Positions 231 through 59,244 of a DNA stretch of 64,000 bases are shown here, piece after piece. Each line of letters starts with the position of its first letter. The stretch's first letter is position 1. Below the pieces are notes generated by a model, which worked only from the letters and a program-made list of their open reading frames with translations, made no database searches and was not told the DNA's origin. A program made the translations under genes and the position numbers. Source of the DNA: Hyphochytrium catenoides (Eukaryota > Protista > Hyphochytriomycota); the NCBI GenBank assembly GCA_900088475.1, contig FLMG01003874.1:37967-101966 (forward strand), written 5' to 3'.

Positions 231-3200
231 ATGCCGCCTCAGAATGAGACTCAGGATGAAGCCCGCGCGGCTGCGGCTGTGCAAATGGCAGCCAAGCGTC
301 TTGTGCGGAGAGGAACCAACTCCTCGGAACTCTCGTTTGGTAACAGAGCTTCTCTGGTCAATCTGCTCTTCCCAACAACACCTGTTCGGGCAGCTAGCAA
401 CGCGCCTGAACCACTGTCTTTTGGACTTTCGCCAGGAAAGAGCATTTTTTTCAACCGAGTGGCTGATCCTGCTGGCATCTATGAGTCCCCAGAAGTGTTT
501 GCCCAATCTCCTCCAAAGCCAAAATTCACCGAAGCAGTACCCGCTGAGCAGAAGCTTGCCAATGCGATCACAGCTAGCGCCCATGTAGCTTATAAACTGA
601 GCGACATCCTCTTTTTATATCCAGCAGCGGCACCGGAATTTGGCGATGAAGCCTTAGGCTGGCAGGAGGAGGGTATTCCTAACGCCTTTGGCTATCCCGG
701 AAAGGTTACTAAAATGCATAGCCGCAATGGCGCTGCGGGGACTGTGCATGGTGCCCTCCTGACGGGCGAGCACGCTTCTGTCCTGTGCTCTGGACAGTCA
801 CTGCCGCTCATGATTCCCTCCATGTACCGGATTGCCAGGTCCAGAATTCCGACGGTCTTTCACGTTGCAGCCGAGAGTACGGAGGACGATTTATCTCTCA
901 TTAACTCTCACGATGACGTGATGGCAGTTCGCCACGCTGGCTTCGCCATGCTCTCCTCGTCGACGCCACAAGAGAGCCATGACCTTTCAGTCATCGCACA
1001 CATTGCATCTCTCCAGCAAAGTTCTCCTTTCCTACATTTCTTTGACGGGAAAACTGCTTCCAAGGAGCTCTCTGCTGTAAAGCTTCTCTCCACAGAGACA
1101 CTGAAGAACATTGCCCAATCTGAAGGGGTACAACGCCACCGCAACAGGCTAGAGACCGGAAACGCTTCTTCTTCAAGCGCAACTTCGTTCCGCGATGCGG
1201 CGCTTGTTCATGACTTGGTATCTTTGATGAACTCTCTAACAAATGTTCTTGGTAAAGAGTACCAGCCGTTTGAGTATCATGGGGCAGCAGATGCTGAGGC
1301 CGTGGTGGTGGTAATGGGAACTGCGGGCGCCGTACTTCACGAGGTGATTGATCATCTCCGCCTTGGAAGGAGAAAATTCGGTTTACTCAAGGTCAGACTG
1401 TTTAGGCCCTGGTCTGCGGAGCACTTCCTGAAAGCCTTGCCTTCCACTGTGCGGCGCATTGCCGTACTCGATCGTTGTGGGGAGTATGCTGGGGAAGCTG
1501 ACCCTCTGTATATGGACGTCCAGTCCTCCATCTCCTCGGCGGATTGGTTTGGCAAGGCACCTCAAGTGGTTGGTGGTCGCTATGGCACTACAAGCGCGGG
1601 GTTTACGGCTGAGATGGCCGCGGCTGTCTTCTCCTACCTCGAAGGCGAAGTTATTGCTCATTCCTTTGCAGTGGGCTTCGAAGATCCTCTGGGCGTTCAC
1701 CTCTCCATTCCCGTTCCCAAGAAGCTAAAGCTAAACGCTCTCTCTAGACACATTGTGCTCTGGGACGAGGTACCGGGCGCCTCTAAGAACAGTGTGCTTG
1801 AGCATCAGGACCTCGTCATGCACCTTCATGAGCACGATGACCTCAGTGTGCAGGGTACTTTTAGCTTGGATAGTAGGAAGGCCTTGGTGGCCAGCAGGAG
1901 CAATCTATCCTTTTATGTGAAGGGAAAGCAGCCCAGCTTCGTTCCAGACGCGGTATACGGAGACCTGGTGGCCTGCGCGTCGGAGTCTTTGCTTGGACTA
2001 TTCGATGTTACTGCTAACCTTAAAAATGGAGGTATTTTTCTCCTAAACAGCTCTGGGGAAGGCGAACTGGAAGATCGGTTCTCCTCCTCTCTCAAGTTCC
2101 AGTTGGCCACTATGCAGGCGCGTGTACTGGTTCTGGATGCGCAAAAGGTGGCTGATGAGTTTGGCTTGAGCGTATCCCGAGTCATGCAGCTTGCAGCCAT
2201 CTCTCTTTTGGATCTTGTAGAGGAGTCAGTGCTAAACGGGCTCATCAGCACTGCAACTCCGGAGTCAGTCCTGCAGCACATTGAAGGCGCACTCATGCCC
2301 GTTCTCTACTCTTCAAAATGGGTGTTACGTGAGGNNNNNNNNNNNNNNNNNNNNNNNNNNNNNNNNNNNNNNNNNNNNNNNNNNNNNNNNNNNNNNNNNN
2401 NNNNNNNNNNNNNNNNNNNNNNNNNNNTTCAAGTCCACCATCTCTTATCTTATTGGAGCTCCCGCCCACTCTGAGGCGAAGACTGCTCGGCGAGCGTTGC
2501 CCCACGAAGCTATCCTGCCAAAGCTGTTCCCAGCTGCTTATGGTGCAAAGGATGGATTTCGTCACAGTGCTACAGCCATTCTTACAGTCACGAAGTGGCA
2601 GCGCCTTACTCCTCTAGATTACGACCGCAACGTCTTCCATATCGAATTTGATACCACAGGCACTGGACTAACCTATAAAATTGGAGAGGCACTTGCTGTG
2701 TATGGCCACAATGACGAGAGAGAAGTTGATAGATTCCTTGAGTTCTATGGCTTGGCCGCTGACGACGTGGTAACCATGCCAAGAGGAAACAAGCAAAAGA
2801 AGGAAGAGCCACTGCCCGGAGAGTCAGAGACGATTCGACATGAAGTTGTAAGCGTTGGGCAGCTCTTTACCCAGGTCTTGGACATCTTTGGCCGCCCACC
2901 TAAGAAGTTCTATGAGGGTCTTGCAGACCATGCAACGGATGAGAAAGAGAAGGAGAAGCTCAACCACATCGTGTCTCCTGAGGGCAAGGAGGAGTTGCAA
3001 AGGAGAATCGAGGAGACCATCACGTACGCTGACCTTTTGAGAGAGTTCCGTTCGGCAAGGCCCTCTTTGGAAGAACTCATCCGTTTAATCAGCCCCATCA
3101 AGCCGCGTCACTACTCTATCGCATCTTCAATGAAGATGAACCCAAATAGCGTGCACCTCTTGATTGTGGTGCATGACTGGAAGACGCCATCGGGGGCATA

Positions 3201-43779: not shown

Positions 43780-46700
43780 CTAGAGGGCTTGGCTTCCGGG
43801 ATGAGCGCTTAGCCTTCTTAGATGTAGGGCTCCTTCCTTGGCCGTCCACTCTTGGATGATGGGCTTCGCATACTCATAACCCACCTGGATTGGAAGGAGA
43901 CATTAGCTCTTTCAGAACCAGCCTTAGGGCTTCCACTTTCTACTTACTGCTACGATCTCATCAAACTTGTCAAACTCCAGTGTATCGAAGTCTTGAATAG
44001 GGGGGTTTAGGTAAAGATCAACACTTTTTTTCACTTCGCTGCGGCAGAGGTCAGTATAACGGCATATGGCGATGGGATCTCGTAGAGCGGGAGAACGTAC
44101 ATTAGCTGCCTCTCTGCTGACACAAAGACCAAGGTCTGCGACACGTCGCCCATAGACGGGACTCTCAGCGTTTTGCTAAATGGATTCAGCTTGTTGAAAA
44201 GCAGCCACCAGCCAGATAGTCTTCAAAAAGATACTTAGCTCTTCAGAAGCGTGGAGCGGACTAGGCTATACTTACGAAGTTCCATAGTCGTAGTAATCCC
44301 GTAGGGGCTGTCTGCCCACGTCTACAGCAATGACACTTCTAACTCCAAGCCCCATCATGACATCTCCTACGAGGAAAGACGTCAACATCCAATTGCATTT
44401 AGATCTAGATCCTTCAGATGGTACCTGGGAGGTTATTTAGGTATCCCCCATCCACCAGAACAGATCCATTATCCGTTATCGGAGGTAGATAACCCTAGCA
44501 ACAAAAATCAGTGCTTACGGAACAAGCGCTCCACCCGAGGAGCCTGACCTGCAGCGACATGGATGCTCGAACGTACTTCCAGAGCGGCCCCTTACGATGG
44601 ACTGCGAGGTGGCTGGAAGCAATGTCCGTGCTCACACAGAAATAGTTGAGCAACAGATCCTGGATGCGCACCTCTCCGAACGTGTGAATGAGTCCTTGAT
44701 TGAACCTGTTACAACTCAGTCATTCGCTTGCCTCCATATGATTTTTTCTTTCTGTCAGGACGAACCTTGACCCATTGAAGAATGACGTTATAGGGAGCGT
44801 GAGGTCCAGCAACTTTTCCAAAGTACTGCCCAACTTTTTACTGAGGTTTCTTGCCTTCTTTACTAACGTAGGATAGTCGTCTGGATACATTGCATACAAG
44901 CCTCCCACAAAAGCCCCACAACTTTACACTCAGAGTCAATTTGCGCGTGTAGTAACCTGGGAGATAGTGGGTAACCTCCTTACCTTGTCCCGCCCACGAT
45001 ATCGATGGGCACTCCGCACTCCTCCAGAGCTCTAATAACGCCAATGTGAGCAAGGCCGCGAGCTCCTCCTCCCCCTACGAAACTCCAACTTCAGTTATGT
45101 GTCGCTCTTTGTCTGCAATCAAGGTTTATACCTAGCACGAGGCCAATAGAAGTGCCTGTAATTCGTCTCATGAGGCGGCCGATGTCATCCAGATGGTCAT
45201 GAAAGGGGGCGCGGACGTTATGGAACCCTCTTTCAGGTTCAGGCGTTAATCAGGCATCCTGAGCTGATGGGGAAGAAGCTTACCTCAACCAACGTCTCTG
45301 CTCGTAGAATTCGCTGATTGGATCACTGGGAACCCTGGGGTCAGTGAACAGATGACCCCAGTCTCTACTAACGTAACGCTGGTAGTTATGCGAGTCGTGT
45401 ATGCTAACCACTTCAATTCTCGGCTGGAGAAAGGAAGACATTGAGATTCGTGCTAATGCGTCCGGGCAAGATAGGTAGAAGACTCACGAACCTGCCGGCT
45501 GCCAAAAGCTTGAATTAGCAGACGCTCCACTGACTTTGGCAGGAAAGGCTTCTTGTTTGCCTAACGATGGAGCTTTGAGAAGCGCATGATCAAAATAGTT
45601 CTCTACTAAGGTACCTCGCATAAGATGAGAATGGCATCTGCCTGACGCACACAAAGTCTCGACCATTCGGAGTCTTTGTACTCAGCTTCAAAAATTACGA
45701 GCCGATGAGCTTCCTCCACCTCCGAGAGAAGATTACTCAGATGAAGCTCCTGAAGTAGTTCCTTTCCTCGGCTGCAGGAGCTCCGTTAGCCACTGCACTT
45801 CCTCCGCCCACTCGGCGTTAGCAGAAGTGTCACTCACGTTGCTCTTCGATGAACAATAGGTCCAAACTTCTGCCGCGCGAATTTGGCGTCAATGTGAATC
45901 GCAGAAGACACCTGCAGGATGCACTGCAGCAATTGATAGGCGAAAACCGAGGCTTGAACCGTTGGAGTGGCCGGAATTACCGCAATCGTTGCCTGAAGCG
46001 TGTCGGCTGTTAGAATCTGGAGCAAACACTCATTAACGAAGTATCTGCAGCTCGCTTACAATCTGGGGGGTCGCAATGCCGTTGGTATTGCCTTGGTTTT
46101 TGGGGTCTATCCTACTCATCTGAGCCACCATCCGCCCAAAGTGCAAGAGTACCTAAGGAGATAAGAGATACATAGTCTCAGTCTCTTGAAATATTAACGC
46201 GAGCTGTTAGGCATTTGAAACTGGCGCTTCAAACCTTGGGGTATCGACTGGCGATGATGTCGAAGACAAGCTTTGGCACCTGGGCCAGTTCGCTGTCTCG
46301 GACGGCAAAGAAAGTCTCATCAAAAGCTTCATCATTGATCATCTCCAAGGCCCCCACTATTTCACCTCGCAGAAAGTCTTTGGTAGTGATAGACGGCTCT
46401 CCAGGCTGGAAGACGGTGAGCGCTCAGCCGGGGTGGCAAGCTTAAAAAGAACGTAAGACGATGCACCTTATCCACCGCCCGGATTCTACCGCTAAGAACG
46501 ATAAATGACGCGTGGGGCCGCTGCCCCTTTTCTACTAGCGTTTCCCCGGCCTAAGGTGAGGAGTGTGCGGCACCCTTAGGCATATCTTGGTAATAGGCGA
46601 AGTCGACAGAAGCTTACCTTAAGGTGGATCCACTCCATCCCGAGATCAAGCTGGTAGACTAGGTCAGAAAAGCTGTCCAGAATCTTCGAGCAAACCCTAG

Positions 46701-48678
46701 GTTGTCGAAAGTTAGCCGGTATCCTAGGTAGGGATTGCATGGAAAATGATGGCACCTAAGTAGAATTCGAGGATCGGTGGACATGCTCATGAATGCTCCC
46801 CGCGGCAACTTTGCAATGGTTGTCTGCTCTGAAGCCACCAGCTGCCAGGCGCGAAAGTTACCAGATGTCGGAAATGGTCGCGGCAACTCACTTACCCCTC
46901 GAGAGCTAGTGCTTCCAGTGAATAAGTTAAGAGGGTCCACAAGCTGGCCAGAAGAATAGGAACTTCTTAAATGCTGTGCTACACTTTAAGACTTACGTGA
47001 GAGCTCCTGTCGCAGTAGTTGCCCTCGGGATGCTCACTTACCGCTTCGGTGTCGCGACTTCTCCTTGCAATATGAATACCATATCAAGTTTGCTATGCGG
47101 TAGCTGTAAGGCCTCTCCAGCATCCATATTCTATATAACATGCAGTAAGTGATACGATATCACCCCGAGCTCCCTTCGTTCTTTTAGGCCAAACCTTAAT
47201 TTCTATGTTTCTGAAGACTGTGTCAGCGAGCTCGGAGGTTCTGGGCAGTCCAAACCAGTCCAGAATCAGCTCCGCCGCCCTCTTCTTGGCTGTTGGGCTG
47301 GAAATATCGGGTGCCGCTAGTAGCTCTTGTACGTCTGAAGGGCTTAGATCTGGAGCTGCACAGGACTCGGAGCGAATGTGGTCCCTCTGACTGTGCTGTC
47401 AGTGGACTGTGTTTACTTTTTCGAGATCAGACACCTACCAGGCCAAAAAAGACTGCCAAGGTTCCAAGAGTGACCCTCTGCAACCTGGTTAATATAGTCT
47501 GCGCCAGTCTCATACTGTCACTGGGATGCTTTAATATCATCATCTTGAACACCGCCGGGGGTATCATTGCTAGAGGATATCAGACGCTGTCAAGTCCGTG
47601 TGATGGCCACCTGAGACGTTATAGAGTGGGCATTGCCTTTTCCTGACCTACATATGTCTTGCCGATGGCTTTAGCTGACATGCTGGACGTGACTTTGGAT
47701 TTGTACTTCGGCTTCTCGGAGAAGGCGTCAACACTACACGCCAAGACCGTGAGGAGAGATGTGAATGCTTCTCCCTACAGCCACTGTCAGCGATGGCACT
47801 TAGATGCAATAGTAAGAGATGACAACGGACCTTTCCCATCCTCCACACTAGTCGATCATGGTGACCAGCCAGCTTAAGATGGATCTCCCCTTCTAGTGAC
47901 CCACTAAGAATGATGAAGATCGTCCCGTCAGACTCTCCTTCTTTAAATAATGCCTCATCGTCCTCCAGGTTCTTAATGGTTATGAGCCTGTATCAAACGT
48001 AAGTTGGTTCCACATTTATGCACGAAAACTAAAGTCTCACCCTAGCATATCCTCAAAGAATGTCGCATTGATGTAGGAGATTAGCTTCACCTAGAGGGAT
48101 TGAATGTAAGCATGTGAGAGACGATGGAAGGGGTCTTATCGGGAGCGAAGATGTGGGAAACAATCCTACTTTGGGAAGGTTCTCTCTCAACCACTGTCTC
48201 CATTCCTCCGTCAGTTCCCCTGTAGACGTGGGATGGTGTTCCAAATCCGCCTCTTGTCGAGGAAGCAACTTTTCTGAGAAGGACAGGCAAGAGTCAGACT
48301 TGATGGGTACGCTTTGGTCAAGGGAGAGACTAAAAAAGGAATGCCATCAACCTTGGCCTTCAGTAGCCGCACTCTCATCAAAGAGAAGGCTCAAGTCAGG
48401 ATCGCTGTGTCGTCGAAGAAGAGCATGATGATCAACTCCTGGTTCTTCTGTCTTTTTAGCAGACTTATCAGCCTTCTTCCGCGGTCGCACTTGTCGGGAT
48501 GCAATCCATAGGTATAGCGCTACAGAGTAGATAGTGCCACTTTAGCCGGCGACGGCTTGCCTCATATATCGAAGGGCCGGAAGTAGACTACAGCGCAGAT
48601 GAGCCTACCTATGGTTAGCACTACCGCGACACCAGCACCTTGCGCGAGACCCAATAGAATGCTGATAGAAATCGCCAT
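43780..48678 (-). CDS. Neuropathy target esterase / NTE1 / PNPLA6-7-like phospholipase B (N-terminal TM, cNMP-binding domains, patatin domain), many exons
   Basis: N-terminal hydrophobic [23 protein letters not shown]. cNMP-like exons ([36 protein letters not shown]). Patatin [64 protein letters not shown]. Confidence 0.88.
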
Positions 48679-49590
48679 TGGCTCATGAGCACCCTAAGGA
48701 GGTCTTTGGAGTGTAAGGGAGGCAGCACGTTCCCGTTCTGCTAAAAGGCAAGGGAGATCTTGAACCTGCCAAAGCCTATGTTCCATGGACAACGTATCAA
48801 AGACTGCAATCGTGAGGTCCCAGGGAGCTTCATCCTCTACCTACCACGATGAACAGAAGTGCTGCTTGTGCATCTGGTGAGCCTCTGTTGCCTATCGCCT
48901 ATGGAGTCGACTTCATCATTCGTCGCAACTGAGAGAGGGCAGCAAGCAGCAAGCCCAAGACGGCAGGCAGCAGCTCCCACAGACTCAGATACTGAGGAAT
49001 ATTCACCTCATTACTCGTACAAAGTCTCTTGGTCTAGAGATCCAGTTGAAGAAACGAATGTACCGGCGATCCAGCAATCCCCTCCGACTCCTGCTACCTA
49101 TACCAGGACTCCTCCTGGAGCAGTGAATCCTGATGTATTTTGGTTTCCTGTTCGCATTGGTCTGGCCCAAGATTCTGGCTCTCTGGTTCTCATATTACTA
49201 CGCCAAAACCGCTTCAGCAATTATTATGGCCTCACACCTACCAAGCCGGCCCTATTGCTACGGTTCGAACTACTGCCAATGCCCCGTCTTGATCGTCCGT
49301 GTAGGGTTTGTAACGACCGCAGAGAAAGTGCAGAAGATGCGCAGGAGGTACAGTCCCGTGTTTATATTCCTAGAGAAGTGAAGCTTGTGCAGCTTCCCAG
49401 CACCCTTCTAGGGACTGCACGTTCCTCTAGTCATGACGGTACTAGCTGCTGGTTCACACTCGCGATAAGTCATTTCTGGGCCTTCTCAATGGCAAGGCAG
49501 TAGCCATGAAGTTTAGTACACTATGCTAAGCTGAGCTCTGAACGACGTGTGTGGGCTGACTCTACTCAAGCAGTGATTGCTCGATTAATT

Positions 49591-52466
49591 ATGACGACCG
49601 AGGTGGTATTCAGAGTCAGATCTTCTCAAGCTGGTGAGTTGGGCCAGCGACACCTACAGAAGGAGGTGCTAACTCTACTAAAAAAACTCTCTTCAACCAG
49701 GCCCCGCCACTTCACTCTATGTGACAGGAAGCTGCAAGGTAGTGTTGCAATAGCGTGGGCGCAGTCTGAGAGTGATGTGATTGCCTCACATCGGACTCCC
49801 TTGCTTGTTAGGCACTTGGAGAGTATTGCCTCCAGAATGCGATTAAACTAGAGAGGGGACCAGCGGAGGCAGAATGGACCACGCGGGTAAAAATCCCGAG
49901 ATCCCACTTGCCGTGCACCTATCGGTAGGACCTACGTTGGTGCAAATAGTATAGTGGAACCTCATGATCGAGTCATCTTGTTCCAGATACTTCCTCAGAA
50001 GGCTGGAGCGTCCTCACGAGCCTCATTCAAGCTACGGAGACTGGGAGATCCAGTGGGAAGCTAATGCAAACTCGCGTTGCATTACCGCCACTTCCCCAGG
50101 CTTAGGTCAAGTACGGAAATATTATTAGGCTTCTCCCTTCCACCGCCAGCGGCGAAATGGTTAACATTCTTTTACTGTCCTCTACCCAGGATACCGTTCA
50201 GGAAGATGGCTGGTTCGGTGACGCTAACTGTGGGGAGAAAAGGATTGAGGACAGGTGTGGCACGTACTGGCAGTCGTCATTACACTCCAGCCTTAGTTTT
50301 GCTCTAGATGGCTTATCCAGGACATGCACCTCCGGCTCTTTCTGGGTGGAAAAGGGTCGAGGTCAGATAGACGCAGATTGCCTCCTCTCACATTGTACAC
50401 GGTGGACAAGGTGAGCTAGCATGTTCCACCCTCTGGAGAAAGTTGGCACTGAGTCTGTTGTGTGAAGGATCAAGTCCGACACCTAACGATCGAGTGCCAT
50501 CGTCGAATGAACGACTGGCAGGATCAGGCACCACTATGTCAGAGGGTATGAACTCCTGAATAGTGCATGCAAACGAGTTTTCTGACCGCCAATTTAAGGT
50601 TACCGTAACAGAGCCATTGTCGTCGTACAAGGACATCATTTCGTTCTTGGGCAGTAGGCCAGATGAGTTCAACATCCTCATTACTCTGTATGCTGCCACC
50701 ACGTCGGGGAGTAGCGTTCATCAAGAAGAACCGATTGGAGAGGGCATCGTCCCGGCTGAGAGATTCCTTTCACATCGAGGATTTGTCACAGTACCAATCC
50801 TCTCACTTTCCACCACCAATACCAAAGGGAGATTCTTCCCAGTTTCAAAAGTCATTGGGGAGTTCACCGCTGAGTTTCAGGCTGTCATGCCTCTGAAGTT
50901 ACCGGCCTCTCTGCACAGAGTCAGGGATGACTCGCTATCAAAAAACTGGCGATCAACGTAGGTGCCATTCTTCTATGCGAACACTGCCTTAAACTCACTC
51001 CTATTCAAGGAGGCTTATGGACATCGGTCATCGGGGCTTGGGCTCCACCATAAAGCTGCACTCCTCTAGTCCAATGCTGAGTGAAAACACTGTTGAGTCG
51101 CTCAATGCTGCAGCAGCTCACGGGGTCGAATTTGTGGAGTTCGATGTGCAGCTTCTTGCGGATGGTAATTCCCTGTCGAAAAGGCTAACCACTTCATGAG
51201 CACAGCGTAACACATGGTGGTAAACAATCCTGCAGGAACCCCCGTGGTCTACCATGACTACATTGCCAAGTACTGTCCGCAGCTGCATGGCGACGTACAG
51301 CTTGAGGTTCCTCTGGCCAGTCTCACTTTGCAGCAATTCAAGCAGCTTGGGAGGAACCACAGGCCCGCCGGTCTTCCGCGGTCAGTCAATCCTACTTCAA
51401 AGGGGTGGTTTATATGCTAACACTTTTGTTAGATTGACAAGAAGGGCGTCCATGTCGGATGCGATATCAAAGAAGATAGTTGAGGACCAGAAACTTGTAA
51501 GGACTCTAGTCCAGGACGAAGGTGTTCCCCCGGACTATCATCTGGTGCCCTATACTTGTCATTCCACCTTCTCAACATTAGAAGAGGTACTTAGCCGATA
51601 TATTCTCCTCAACAGCCCCACATTGTCTTAAGCCTCTGAAATGCTCACAGGTGTGCCGCCTTGTCTCCAACAATGTTGGCTTCCTAGTGGAAGTGAAATA
51701 TCCTTCTGATTTGGCAAAGGAGAAGATGCGAATCAACTTTCCTGAAAGAAACTACGTCTGTGACCGAATACTGGAAGTGCTAGCGAAATGGGCCGGTAGG
51801 ACGCTGATGCACTGCATGTTCGCTCGTCTGGAGCGACGTAGAAATCCTTGACTTACGGGCTTCACCTTATAGGCCAACGTCGAATTGCCCTTCAGTCATT
51901 TGACCCAGAGGTTTGCGTTATGCTAAACCTGAAACAGCCTCTTTGTAAGTGCCCACCCGTAAGCCCATGCCACATAAGTCACTCACTTTTTCGGTTTGAC
52001 AGTTCATGTGCTATTTCTTTCTGATGCGAAGAGCGCTGAGATGCCAGCTGATTTTGAGGATGACGACCTCGATGTCTTTGATTCTCGGTGTACTCGGATC
52101 GACCGCTCGATTGATTTTGCATGCTCGGAAAAGTTTGCGGGCATCGTGATGGATGCGGTAGGACTCTTCTTTCAGTGGCGTAGCACATCTGCTCCAGCTA
52201 AGCATACCTAACTACCCTAACAGGCTGCACCCCTAAGCACCCCTGAAATAGCCGCTGACGCAAAGAAGAAAGGCCTTCTGATATTTACTTATGGCAAAGA
52301 TAATGCTGATGTTGTACAGATCAAGAAGGAGAAGGCCATCGGCGTTGACGCTGTGATAGGTACGCACTTTCGCTGCGGAGCTAATAAGATCAAACTGACG
52401 TACGATACAACGATCACAGGGGATTTTGTCTATCGGCACAAAAACAATCGAGATGCCTGCAGCTGA
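49591..52466 (+). CDS. GPCPD1: Glycerophosphocholine phosphodiesterase GPCPD1/GDE5 (Gde1-like) with N-terminal CBM20, multi-exon
   Basis: Spliced CBM20: MTTEVVFRVR..LYVTGSCKALGEY..AIKL..EWTTRVKIP..YRYF..QWEANANSRCI. GDPD domain: DIGHRGLG, ENTVESLNAAAAHGVEFVEFDVQL, PVVYHD, FSTLEEV, GFLVEVKYP, SFDPEVC, GVDAVIGD. Confidence 0.88.
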
Positions 52467-54992: not shown

Positions 54993-57489
54993 ATGAGTGA
55001 AATCGCCGATGCCGCCGAGAGGGCGAGAGCGATCGCCGCTCGCCTTACTGCCACACTGATGGGGGGAGGAGGAGGAGGCGGAGCACCTGCTCCAGTAGGT
55101 GCAGATTCAGGTGATAGATAGTTTAGCTTAGCCCTCACATAAGTGACGATGTGATGACTGACATGGTTTCTCTTAGGGGACGCTTTGGGCAAGAGGAAGA
55201 ACAGATGGACTGAGGTCTGCCTAGGAATATAGTTATCATCACTTGCTTGATACGAACTTGGAATTCTTAACCAACAGGAATCTGACAGCTCGAGCCAGTG
55301 GGGATGGAGCAAAGGTACGCCTCTTCCTGCCAAATTTGAAGATTCTCAAGCTAATAACAATGCTTAGGAGATGGAGACTCTAAGAAACGGAAGATTGAGA
55401 AGAAGATCTACATCCCTCAGGATAACCCAGATATCAATTTCATGGGCCTCTTGCTAGGACCCAGAGGATCCAATCAGAAGCGGATGGAGGAAGCTTCTGG
55501 GGCACGCATCTTTATTCGGGGCCGTGGTTCGTCTAAGGTGAGCTGTTTCCAGCCGGTTGACAATTCAAAGTAGTAACCAAGGCCTCGTCTTGGCCAGGAT
55601 CCTCTACCTGCCAATTCACCCGATGCAGATGAGGATCTCCATGTATTCATCACTGGCGAGACGGAAGAATCAGTAAGTACATGCCGTTTGGAATTAATCT
55701 TTGCCTGACCAACTGCGTGAAAGGTTGGTGAAGCCGCAAAAATGGTAGAAGAGATCCTGTTTAACCCTCAGCAAGCTATGGCACTGAAGCGGGCTCAGCT
55801 GCGAAAGTAAGTTCTGCACTTTTTCTCAGCTCCAAGGTTACCCATCAGCTTGACGGAATCGTCGTTTAGCTTGGCGGAGATGAATGGGACACTAAGGGGT
55901 GATGAGGGCACGGGTGGCTCTGGTCATTACGGACCTGGTAAGGATCATAAGCTTTGATGCATTTATATTTATAATCATTGGCCCTACAAGGAGGCGGAAA
56001 CTCCTTGTTAGGTGATGGCGAGAACAAGGTAGAACTCAAAGTACGGCAGGAGAATGTTGGCCTCATCATTGGCAAAGGTGGTGAAACAATTCGAGACATC
56101 CAGATGAGATCAGGGGCTCATATCCAGGTACGGTAGCTCAGTCGTCACTCCCCCGCCCACAGTCTGACGGTCCATTCAGGTCGTCAAAGAGACTGAGGTC
56201 AATTCCAGGGATTCGGACCGCTCCGTGTACATTAGCGGTGCGCCTGACGCGGTCGAAAGAGCAAAGAAGCTTATCAACCAGGTTCTAGGAGACCGCGGCC
56301 GGGGCACTTCGGGTGCAAAGGTTATCACAGTTGGGGTGCCCAACGAGAGAGTTGGGCTCATAATCGGCAAAGCTGGCACCACAATTAAGGGCATTCAGCA
56401 ACGGACAGGGACGAATATTAATGTACCGGATAGTGCAGACCAAAACAACCCTGCTCAAAGGTGTGTAAGGCTATGCTGAGTGGAAGAATTTGAGCTGACC
56501 CGCTGTGACACAGGACTGTGGAGATATCGGGGAGTGAAGAGGGTTGCGCTGCTGCAAAGGCAGAGATCGAGGGCCTGCTGTCTGGAGGGAACCCTGCTGT
56601 TCCAGCTGGGGCAATAGAGTACATGGTGGTTCCTAACGAGCGGGTGGGTGTCGTCATTGGCAAAAGAGGAGAAACGATAAAGGGCATCCAAGCTAGGACT
56701 GGATGCAAGATCAATGTACCTAACTTCCCTGATGCAAACTCAAATCCGCCCGTGAGGTATGGTTACTAGAGCGTGGTATATACTTCGTTTGCGCCTAACA
56801 CTCTCTGGTGCTATGCCAGGACCATCACCATTATTGGTGGCGATCCTAACCTTGCCAAGTATGAAATCCAGTCACTCCTGTCAGGCCAGGTGAGACAATC
56901 GCCTCCATCGGCTCAGCGTCTGCGATATCATTGACTCTTCACTTCCTGCCCCCTCAGTCATACGGGTTTGGACAACCACCGCCCCAGCAGCAGCAGCAAG
57001 GGTACGTTAACTCTACGTAATGAAAGATACGTGTTGGCAATTCTAACCCCATTAACTGTGGTCCAGATACTATGATCAGTACAGTAACTACCAGGTACTA
57101 AGGTTCTTCCTATCATTGATCGGTTCTCCTATTGACGTTGGACTCCTTTTGTTTCTTCATCACTGAAGTTCCCCCAGTATGGACAAGGCGGATTTCCGCA
57201 GCAGTACCCAGCAGCTGGCTATGATCAGGGCTACAACCAACCATCAGCTACCTCACAACCTGCTACTCAGCCAACGCCTGACCAGCAAGCACCTGGAACA
57301 ACTGACGATAGCGCTGCCCCTGGTACCACGAACGCACCCGCTGCGGGGGATCCCAACGACCCACACGCCTTTTGGTTCGGATTTGATGCATATGCTGGTT
57401 ATTATGGCCGCGAAGCTGCGGTACAAGCCTGGGGAAGTGAGCCGCCCCCAGAGGCCCTAAAGGCAGCCGCAACACCCCGACAGGTGTGA
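54993..57489 (+). CDS. KH-domain RNA-binding protein: FUBP-like N-terminal box + SF1/BBP-type KH-QUA2 + three type-I KH domains + Q/Y/P-rich tail; many small exons
   Basis: [14 protein letters not shown]; [59 protein letters not shown]; three VG(L/V)(I/V)IGKxGxTI GxxG loops. Confidence 0.88.
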
Positions 57490-57670: not shown

Positions 57671-58129
57671 TCACAATGGGAGTAGGGCTTTAGCAGCGTT
57701 GATTATGTTATCTGGGTCCGAGAAGAGCATTAGCGTCAGCTCAGTGACCAGGCTGTACAGACTGAAGAACATCAGGATTGAATAAAGTCCGCCTTCTACA
57801 AGGATCTCCCTCTTCTTTCGCCTGAGGACACCGTACTTCAGAATCGTCGTAGGGTCAACAAGGTGCTCCTTCTGGCGATATCGGATGAAGTTTAAAGCCA
57901 CAAGTGGTAGTTGAGTCAGTAGCATGAGGTACTTCCCCGCTACAATCAGAAGGGATGACATCAGGAAGTGTAGGATATATGCGGGGAAGACCCATGGGTT
58001 GTAAGCTTCCGCGACGTCGGCCGGGTTCAGATAATCGCGCTCCAAGTCCCATAAACAGGTAAAAAGATGACCACTTAGGAAGCACAAAGCAGAGCTCGCA
58101 AGAAGCTCCACCACCCAGAGGAGCCACAT
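57671..58129 (-). CDS. Cornichon/Erv14 family ER cargo receptor, intronless
   Basis: LWDLERDYLNPAD..YNPWVFPAY.LH, LPLVALN, HLVDPTTI, three hydrophobic helices. Confidence 0.9.
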   Translation of the reverse strand: MWLLWVVELLASSALCFLSGHLFTCLWDLERDYLNPADVAEAYNPWVFPAYILHFLMSSLLIVAGKYLMLLTQLPLVALNFIRYRQKEHLVDPTTILKYGVLRRKKREILVEGGLYSILMFFSLYSLVTELTLMLFSDPDNIINAAKALLPL

Positions 58130-59244
58130 GGCGCAAAGTCGACCTGGATAAGTGAAAGCCGACCCGCTAGGTCTAAATGGCTATCCCTTTAACTCCTTCT
58201 TCCGGGGATGAGTTCCTCCTCTTCCTGTCTCCTTAATTCACAGCGCCAACCTCCTATCGTCGAGCGTCAAACCCAATATTAGTCGTCGTTTGTTGTCTAC
58301 CCATAAGATCCGGTCTCAGCGTCCAAAGGGCTTTTCTCCAGAGCGGAACTCCTTCTCCCTGCGCAAATAGCTCGTCTACCACAGATAACCCAGTTGCATC
58401 CACAGGGTGCGACCGCACCGTCGCAATTCACAGAAAAGAGCCCTCTCGGAGGTACAAGGATCAGCGGCAGCACCAGGAAGGCGAGAGGCGAGTGACCTGC
58501 GAGTGAGCAGATGAAGAAAAGACCGTGGCGGAAGTTGACTAGCCGGTAGGCGGGCAGTGGCAGTGACACGGTGATACATGACGGTTCGAAGTCGGTATTA
58601 CTAAACTTCAGCCTAGAGTCCTAGGGCTGAGAATCGGTGTACATCATGGGCTATTATTACTGTAGCTTGGTGCCCTAAAGATACACTCCTCACACTCTCG
58701 CCTAGGTCCTAACAATAATATAATTGTCCTGGGTCCTGGGTCCTCATGGGTCCTCGGCAGCGCGCACATACAAGGACCTTCATTCAGATGCTGGCTGGTC
58801 CAGGACTTGTCCCTTGCTTGCGTTTGATGACAGACAGCAGCCACCCTTGTAAAAGGAAAGGCACCAAAGAGCCGGAGGATAAATGCGACCTTGAGGAGCT
58901 GCCTTCCGCATGTTGTTGAAAAGAGGGACCCGATCAGTTTGCGCTCCTCCGAGTCTCCATGAGCAGAATCGATATGAGTGGCCTGCATTATTGCACAACT
59001 CTCTCAGCCAGGTACTTCCAGTTCAGCGTCGAAGGAGCTTGGAGCCTTACGAGCATCGCTCACCCATCTAGGAGTGCCGACATTGATGGGAGGACGTCCG
59101 AGGTGGCTTATGGTTTCCTGCCTGTCTAATGGGACGGATGGTTGAAGCGATTTGTCGCCTCTGCTCGTTGGGATATACACCTTGTCCTGTGACCCACGAC
59201 ACTGTATTGTGGTTTGCGAATGTGCTCAACGAGACCAGGTGCTC

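Follow-up and report, generated by a model that had tools for sequence, protein, structure and literature searches.

Enzymes of the NTE/PNPLA6-7/Nte1 type deacylate phosphatidylcholine (PC) and lysophosphatidylcholine (LPC) to glycerophosphocholine (GPC), and GPCPD1/GDE5-type enzymes convert GPC into choline and glycerol-3-phosphate. These steps are consecutive in animals and yeast. To our knowledge, NTE1/PNPLA6 and GDE1/GPCPD1 are unlinked in yeast and human, and we know of no NTE-GPCPD1 pathway cluster from fungi, animals or oomycetes. A full-text literature search surfaced no paper reporting such a pair. PNPLA7 and GDE5/GPCPD1 have been described as working consecutively, from PC or LPC through GPC to choline and glycerol-3-phosphate, and loss of PNPLA7 in the mouse leads to up-regulation of GDE5/GPCPD1 (PMC10046082). 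A further source places PNPLA6 at the step from PC/LPC to GPC (PMC11906636). The initial annotation of the present locus, which called the two enzyme types consecutive, agrees with both sources.

The window, a stretch of 64,000 nucleotides from the hyphochytrid Hyphochytrium catenoides, carries one gene of each type, arranged head to head. The start codons had been placed about 910 bp apart, and the divergent ATGs are indeed separated by 912 bp (48679-49590). The features of the minus-strand gene are as follows, in window coordinates.

43780..48678, minus strand: NTE/PNPLA6-7/Nte1-type lysophospholipase / phospholipase B gene (collinear tblastn, Pfam, ATG and stop read directly)
48609..48678, minus strand: first coding exon with the ATG and a 23-residue hydrophobic N-terminus (three-frame reading, GT donor after ...VLTI)
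46232..47992, minus strand: cyclic-nucleotide-binding-like domains (Pfam PF00027, three exon frames)
45609..45785, minus strand: NTE_Ploop exon (PF24179, E 2.8e-10, 40.8 bits against a cut-off of 27)
44417..45228, minus strand: patatin catalytic domain (PF01734 in a six-frame genome search, motif reading, identity to oomycete NTE)

The gene opens with an ATG at 48676-48678 and closes with a TAG stop at 43780-43782. It shares its domain order with NTE/PNPLA6 and PNPLA7 of animals, Swiss cheese of Drosophila and Nte1 of yeast: an N-terminal hydrophobic segment, cNMP-binding-like domains, NTE_Ploop, and a patatin domain with GGGxRG, GxSxG and DGG motifs. Named NTE proteins are collinear with it over its whole length, from 48595 down to 43816 in tblastn. 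The nearest of these are oomycete proteins, in line with the stramenopile affinity proposed at first. They begin to align with their N-termini at 48595, extend to 43837, and are only about 48% identical across the aligned parts (about 480 residues). Oomycete NTE genes are nearly intronless, whereas the hyphochytrid gene is divided into many short exons. A crude splice-graph gene finder over-split these exons and its model was discarded, so the exon chain is only partly resolved.

The hydrophobic N-terminus may be a membrane anchor. Exon-wise Pfam searches placed cNMP_binding matches at 47651-47992, 46365-46550 and 46232-46423 (E 2.2e-4 to 7.3e-3), each scoring below the gathering threshold, as the domains are interrupted by introns; their positions are collinear with those in oomycete NTE. 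The NTE_Ploop exon lies upstream of the patatin domain, which was matched at 44426-44923 and 44986-45078 in the six-frame search and is 48-53% identical to oomycete NTE. In-frame reading located the glycine-rich GGGGARG at 45055-45075 and D-G-G at 44441-44455. The G-T-S-C-G motif spans 44986-45000 and 44900-44920, a short intron interrupting its Ser codon as AG|T. The Ser-Asp dyad and the glycine-rich oxyanion loop expected of this family are thereby present. The gene product would be an ER-type serine hydrolase that is apparently intact, and its initial naming as an NTE1-type phospholipase B stands on the cNMP_binding, NTE_Ploop and patatin domains and the collinear alignment.

On the plus strand, the second gene was modelled by hand.

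49591..52466, plus strand: GPCPD1/GDE5-type glycerophosphodiester phosphodiesterase gene, 15 exons, about 624 codons (hand-built GT..AG model, Pfam GDPD and C2_GDE1)
49591..50110, plus strand: CBM20 module, exons 1-4 (HMM from CBM20 domains of the same genome)
50190..50957, plus strand: candidate GDE1-like C2 domain, exons 5-7 (PF25329, weak; the exon 6/exon 7 junction is uncertain)
51010..52466, plus strand: GDPD catalytic domain, exons 8-15 (PF03009, six-frame genome match and motifs)

The model runs from the ATG at 49591 to a TGA at 52464-52466, and its 15 exons total 1875 nt in frame. The introns are GT..AG and 52-84 nt long, together with one uncertain intron of 167 nt. Human GPCPD1, at 672 aa, compares with about 624 aa predicted here. 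The GDPD domain was matched at 50993-51196 (PF03009, E 5.5e-10, 40.2 bits against a cut-off of 23.6) and more weakly at 52221-52463. We notice the motifs GHRG (51026-51037), SENT (51080-51091), EFDVQ (51137-51151) and VYHD (51247-51258); together with the patatin motifs of the neighbor, they bear out the earlier statement that both genes keep catalytic motifs. The C2_GDE1 model matched 50560-50958 weakly (E 1.1e-3, 19.7 bits, under the cut-off of 27), and a genome-wide search with this model matched nothing anywhere, controls included.

Exon-wise Pfam and PDB searches of this gene gave no CBM20 match. An HMM that we built with 10 CBM20 domains taken from this genome, on the other hand, aligned collinearly with exons 1, 2, 3 and 4 at profile positions 2-11, 16-24, 26-61 and 73-89. 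Exon 3 scored 12.3 bits (E 7e-6), and exons 1-4 gave four of the five top scores among the 15 exons. We assign an N-terminal CBM20 with moderate confidence on this basis. The product would be a cytosolic GPCPD1/GDE5-type enzyme, apparently intact, with a putative CBM20-C2-GDPD architecture. As in mammalian GPCPD1/GDE5, CBM20 stands at the extreme N-terminus, a candidate C2-like domain in the middle and GDPD with its catalytic His, Glu and Asp motifs at the C-terminus, although single exons match CBM20 and C2 only weakly and the specificity for GPC is taken from the family. Searches with the spliced models of both genes used single exons.

The label Gde1/GPCPD1 in the initial annotation therefore holds for GPCPD1/GDE5 (CBM20-GDPD) and fails for yeast Gde1 (SPX-ankyrin-GDPD). 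CBM20 fills about 105 N-terminal residues, where SPX or ankyrin domains could not fit as well, and Pfam matched neither of these on any exon of the gene. What is shared with yeast Gde1 is the GDPD catalytic family, the same presumed reaction on GPC, and a weak match to the Pfam model named GDE1-like C2.

The interval between the two genes contains a long open frame.

48679..49590, no strand: inter-ATG interval, putative shared promoter region (912 bp, sequence)
48853..49500, plus strand: 216-codon open frame inside the interval (200 aa from the ATG at 48901; P = 0.001 by simulation)

Because this open frame occupies most of the supposed promoter, a shared bidirectional promoter is uncertain. 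If the frame belonged to a genuine small orphan gene or formed an upstream exon, the NTE and phosphodiesterase genes would not be immediate neighbors; the NTE gene would share a promoter of about 220 bp with the open frame, and the phosphodiesterase gene would be driven from within or just after it. Only 0.1% of composition-matched simulations produced an open frame of this length in the interval, an ATG stands at 48901, and the frame stops 88 nt ahead of the GDPD gene ATG, all of which speak for a real gene. Its codon log-odds of 0.03 bit/codon, however, equal those of random open frames (0.002 +/- 0.064) and lie far below those of real exons (0.22 pooled), and GC3 is lower than GC2. No similarity was found in Pfam, the Atlas or the paralogues, its exact sequence is absent from the protein collection, and the AF2 prediction reached a pLDDT of 37.8. 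We also rejected the idea that it is the orthologue of the Rsa3 neighbor of oomycete NTE, to which it shows no similarity. A real gene at this position is thus rather doubtful; were it one, its product might be a regulator peculiar to this lineage or join the two enzymes as the third component of a module.

Regulatory motifs were sought in the same interval. The P1BS-like GAATATTC at 48997 is not enriched, with 11 matches in the window against 9.6 expected, and no k-mers common to the interval and the upstream regions of the paralogues occur beyond chance. A bacterial-type promoter scan was set aside as irrelevant to this interval.

In the surroundings of the pair, from about 40.8 to 58.2 kb, gene orientation alternates every time (judged roughly from open frames and their codon scores rather than full gene models), and head-to-head spacing below 1 kb is not unusual at this compact locus. 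No lipid genes were recognised in either flank. Pfam matches identify a flanking cornichon gene and a KH-domain gene; the coiled-coil-looking upstream gene and the gene at 53.0-53.8 kb have no match. Farther away, a PFOR-like ORF at 231-2471 matches only bacterial PFORs in a search. Elsewhere in the genome, contig C1704 carries another NTE-like gene and contig C121 another CBM20-GDPD (GPCPD1-like) gene. The first contig has no GDPD and the second no patatin, so these paralogues are unlinked; a six-frame search confined GDPD to contigs C3660, C121 and C2738.

In order to see whether the pairing extends beyond this genome, we compared NTE loci of other eukaryotes with flanks of up to 10 kb per side, several of the loci having short flanks. 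A GDPD gene was next to NTE at 0 of 12 informative distinct loci. The loci checked comprise those of Phytophthora pseudosyringae (L001) and Saprolegnia parasitica (L017), an oomycete-like Logan contig (L002), and the further eukaryotic loci L003, L004, L005, L018, L019, L025 and L027, with L006 and L026 as near-duplicates of L005 and L025. Loci L001-L015 were covered by tblastn of the window GDPD exons, and L017-L019 and L025-L027 were judged from precomputed Pfam lists. The metagenome loci L008-L015, seen by tblastn only, gave no match at E <= 0.01; among them, only L013 and L014 reach beyond about 3.5 kb on the upstream side of the match. Oomycete NTE instead has an upstream neighborhood of Rsa3, DOT1 and F-box genes. 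As far as these data reach, then, the pair is not conserved in relatives.

The nearest comparators are oomycetes, the closest lineage with sequenced genomes, from two sampled orders (Phytophthora, Saprolegnia), not hyphochytrids, and since they are only about 48% identical, a linkage conserved within hyphochytrids could go unseen. Exon-level searches for closer relatives gave no match above about 66% identity: the patatin exon reached at best 61-66% against 1.8 billion representatives, and the C2 exon matched neither metagenome contigs nor a word search. An alignment-based metagenome scan returned 8 loci, most of them short, with identities of about 50%. One candidate, P0007, was a spurious bacterial match and was rejected.

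Both genes are real and belong to ordinary families; the adjacency is probably specific to this lineage, and chance rearrangement, rather than selection, is its most likely origin. The minus-strand enzyme would deacylate PC and LPC to GPC and the plus-strand enzyme would split GPC into choline and glycerol-3-phosphate, reactions we infer from family knowledge. Both would be transcribed divergently from the 0.9-kb interval; the genome is compact, and neighboring genes face opposite ways. The pair would have arisen by chance rearrangement, without being retained by selection as a pathway cluster, and any co-expression would be of the generic kind found between close divergent neighbors. From about 18,500 genes in the genome (PMC5795050), 2 of them NTE-like and 3 with GDPD, we estimate the chance of this particular adjacency at about 6e-4. 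A whole-genome scan over a few thousand consecutive-enzyme pairs would be expected to yield roughly 0.1 to 1 chance neighbors. The small value for this specific pair and the strictly consecutive products count against chance.

The same two points would fit a co-regulated catabolic pair, in which the 0.9-kb bidirectional promoter couples PC deacylation to GPC hydrolysis, recycling choline, phosphate or glycerol-3-phosphate, and selection keeps the linkage in this lineage. The divergent orientation with ATGs 912 bp apart points the same way, as does the mouse response to PNPLA7 loss, which shows transcriptional coupling of the steps in at least one system (PMC10046082); the consecutive action itself rests on that work and on PMC11906636. 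Against it, the pairing is absent at every other NTE locus examined, both sampled oomycete orders included, the paralogues are unpaired, the interval holds no enriched or shared motif, and the long open frame may split it. We regard co-regulation maintained by selection as unlikely. Its fullest form is distinctly improbable, namely a two-gene module of hyphochytrids, kept by selection and served by a bidirectional promoter, that salvages choline and phosphate from phosphatidylcholine. The algal scenario of lipid remodelling under P or N starvation serves only as an analogy, since the hyphochytrid is a non-photosynthetic osmotroph.

With chance adjacency as the preferred reading, the present value of the locus lies mainly in annotation, since it cleanly documents genes of the NTE and GPCPD1 types in a stramenopile lineage that has been little studied. 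A further use is as a worked example: where a compact genome brings functionally suggestive genes together, conservation or expression data should come before the label of a cluster. Were the pairing a product of selection, protists would have a rare case in which one divergent promoter serves two consecutive enzymes of phospholipid turnover, and a handle on the regulation of PC recycling outside animals and yeast would be gained.

Known divergent catabolic pairs and small metabolic clusters of eukaryotes include yeast GAL1-GAL10 and the DAL cluster. Those arrangements are conserved across related species and have been shown to be co-regulated, whereas the NTE-GPCPD1 pair was not conserved at the other NTE loci examined. 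What the hyphochytrid locus has in common with them is its layout: consecutive enzymes, divergent transcription and a short common interval.

The window is eukaryotic and rich in introns (GC ~50%), and its introns are short, running from GT to AG over 52-84 nt. At 43.8-52.5 kb, a bacterial-style ORF list yielded fragments only, while the expected domains are carried by stop-free frames. On the minus strand (43780-48678), we located the following features.

47651-47992, 46365-46550 and 46232-46423, minus strand: cNMP_binding, three exon frames (Pfam)
45609-45785, minus strand: NTE_Ploop (Pfam, E 2.8e-10)
45055-45075, minus strand: GGGGARG motif (frame reading)
44426-44923 and 44986-45078, minus strand: Patatin (Pfam, six-frame genome search)
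44441-44455, minus strand: D-G-G motif (frame reading)

Frame reading also recovered the G-T-S-C-G motif of patatin, in which the codon of the nucleophile Ser is split between AG and T by a short intron (44921-44985, minus strand). The gene starts with the ATG at 48678, followed by a hydrophobic N-terminus of 23 residues, and stops with TAG at 43780-43782. The gene has many exons, whose chain was traced in part; a crude gene finder gave too many. From 48595 down to 43816, it aligns collinearly with named NTE proteins. The closest are those of oomycetes (~48% identity, ~480 residues), as expected of the sister group of hyphochytrids; identity is 38-40% to fungal and remaining other NTE proteins and ~33-36% to animal ones. 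Judged from these domains, motifs and alignments, the minus-strand gene is of the NTE/PNPLA6-7/Nte1 type.

The plus-strand phosphodiesterase gene was read by hand as 15 exons, extending from the ATG at 49591 to the TGA at 52464-52466 and summing to 1875 nt in frame (~624 codons). All junctions are GT..AG, with E6/E7 the sole uncertain one. All four GDPD motifs (GHRG, SENT, EFDVQ and VYHD) are found, together with two Pfam domains.

50560-50958, plus strand: C2_GDE1 (Pfam; weak, E 1.1e-3, under the cut-off)
50993-51196 (E 5.5e-10) and 52221-52463, plus strand: GDPD (PF03009, Pfam)

Exon-by-exon searches of Pfam and PDB matched nothing in the N-terminal 105 residues; both spliced models were searched one exon at a time. 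We trained a CBM20 HMM on ten such domains from this genome, and exons 1, 2, 3 and 4 match it collinearly (2-11, 16-24, 26-61 and 73-89 of the profile). All four rank among the five top-scoring of the 15 exons, and E3 alone reaches E 7e-6. Because the four exons follow the profile in order, we infer an architecture of CBM20, a putative C2 and GDPD, by which the phosphodiesterase is assigned at the sequence level to the GPCPD1/GDE5 type. The initial annotation had described a divergent pair with an NTE1-type member, catalytic motifs kept in both genes and start codons about 910 bp apart, and our reading agrees, with a measured distance of 912 bp (48679-49590).

CBM20 starch-binding modules are unusually numerous in this genome, occurring on at least 16 contigs (e.g. 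C2276:13757-14008, C31:9131-9391 and C2158:3490-3759), and many belong to long open frames (340-700 aa) uninterrupted by introns.

The interval between the start codons contains an open frame of 216 codons (48853-49500, plus strand; ATG at 48901), which stops 88 nt short of the phosphodiesterase ATG. This frame may represent an orphan gene or an upstream exon, or may have arisen by chance. Its length is statistically unusual, reached in 0.1% of composition-matched simulations (P ~0.001), but its codon log-odds, 0.03 bit/codon, matches the random-frame value (0.002 +/- 0.064) and falls well short of the 0.22 of pooled real exons. Searches of Pfam, Atlas and the paralogues gave zero matches, comparison with the Rsa3 gene, which holds the same position in oomycetes, revealed no similarity, and the predicted structure has a pLDDT of 37.8. 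With non-coding-like codon usage and no homologues in these searches, we regard a real gene or exon as rather doubtful. A P1BS-like palindrome, GAATATTC, lies inside the interval at 48997, but across the window such motifs show no enrichment (11 matches vs 9.6 expected). No k-mer common to the interval and the upstream regions of the paralogues rose above chance.

Hyphochytrium catenoides is a non-photosynthetic osmotroph, so an algal nutrient-starvation scenario applies by analogy only. Its genome publication reports 454 cDNA sequencing as well, giving SRX033129 and ERS1151585 as accessions (PMC5795050). In mammals, PNPLA7 yields GPC (PMC10046082), as does PNPLA6 (PMC11906636); GDE5/GPCPD1 is regarded as the enzyme converting GPC to choline, and it is up-regulated upon PNPLA7 loss (PMC10046082). 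The logic of two consecutive steps, as the initial annotation had it, is sound. Its further proposal of a candidate pathway gene pair finds no support in synteny: no GDPD gene adjoins NTE in any of 12 distinct informative loci of other eukaryotes, that is, loci with enough surrounding DNA (flanks up to 10 kb a side).

L001: Phytophthora pseudosyringae
L002: oomycete-like contig in which NTE has the Rsa3-DOT1-F-box neighbours of L001
L017: Saprolegnia parasitica
L003, L004, L005, L018, L019, L025 and L027: seven further eukaryotic loci (L006 and L026 are near-duplicates)
L013 and L014: metagenome loci, the informative two of eight; the other six have at most ~3.5 kb upstream of the match and carry little weight

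This absence is based on Pfam lists for L001-L006, L017-L019 and L025-L027, and on tblastn with the window's exons against L001-L015. Exon-level searches for close relatives gave nothing over ~66% identity, and the nearest lineage compared is that of the oomycetes. The oomycete loci L001 (6445-13477) and L002 (6913-13342) have F-box, DOT1, Rsa3 and NTE in common, and two eukaryotic contigs, L003 (6947-18782) and L027 (475-12259), share the order NmrA, NTE, then FA desaturase and ArfGap-methyltransferase.

The genome holds a second, more divergent NTE-like gene with NTE_Ploop and patatin matches (C1704:61113-63233, minus strand) and a second GPCPD1-like (CBM20-GDPD) gene (C121:76668-80135, minus strand). 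In the latter, a weak CBM_20 match (80031-80135) adjoins the GDPD exons (E 2.7e-20 and 1.6e-13), two exons share 39-59% identity with the window phosphodiesterase, and the 5' end is ~2.6 kb from the end of the contig. The two paralogues are unlinked: C1704 lacks GDPD, and C121 lacks patatin. Neither flank of the pair yielded a recognised lipid gene; an upstream gene of coiled-coil appearance and a gene at 53.0-53.8 kb had no match, and two downstream genes were identified.

55358-56766, plus strand: multi-KH-domain RNA-binding gene (Pfam)
57674-58180, minus strand: cornichon-family gene, apparently single exon (PF03311, E 5.9e-29)

On a coarse reading, each successive gene at ~40.8-58.2 kb switches strand, which makes close head-to-head pairs the local norm. 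Farther off, an open frame at 231-2471 (plus strand) resembles PFOR, its top matches being bacterial pyruvate:ferredoxin oxidoreductases at 36-38% identity.

The a priori probability of this exact adjacency is small, ~6e-4, given two NTE-like genes with two neighbours each, three GDPD genes and a gene number of ~18,500 (PMC5795050), which speaks for a selected, co-regulated module. By estimate rather than calculation, a genome-wide scan for consecutive-enzyme neighbours would by chance alone meet some 0.1 to 1 of them. Against selection stand the 12 loci without a neighbouring GDPD gene, the paralogues on separate contigs, the flanks free of recognised lipid genes and the head-to-head spacing usual in this locus, so that such a module seems unlikely. 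Its strongest form, a bidirectionally promoted NTE-GPCPD1 choline/phosphate salvage module selected in hyphochytrids, is less likely still. The likeliest account, which we favour with some reserve on these same grounds, is that two ordinary genes became neighbours in this lineage specifically, probably by chance.

A full-text literature search surfaced no report of an NTE-GPCPD1-type gene cluster. In yeast and human, the counterparts of the two genes are not known to be linked. The plus-strand gene had been labelled Gde1/GPCPD1, of which the GPCPD1 part stands and the Gde1 part is ruled out by domain architecture: yeast Gde1 is SPX-ankyrin-GDPD, whereas the window phosphodiesterase has CBM20, a putative C2 and GDPD.
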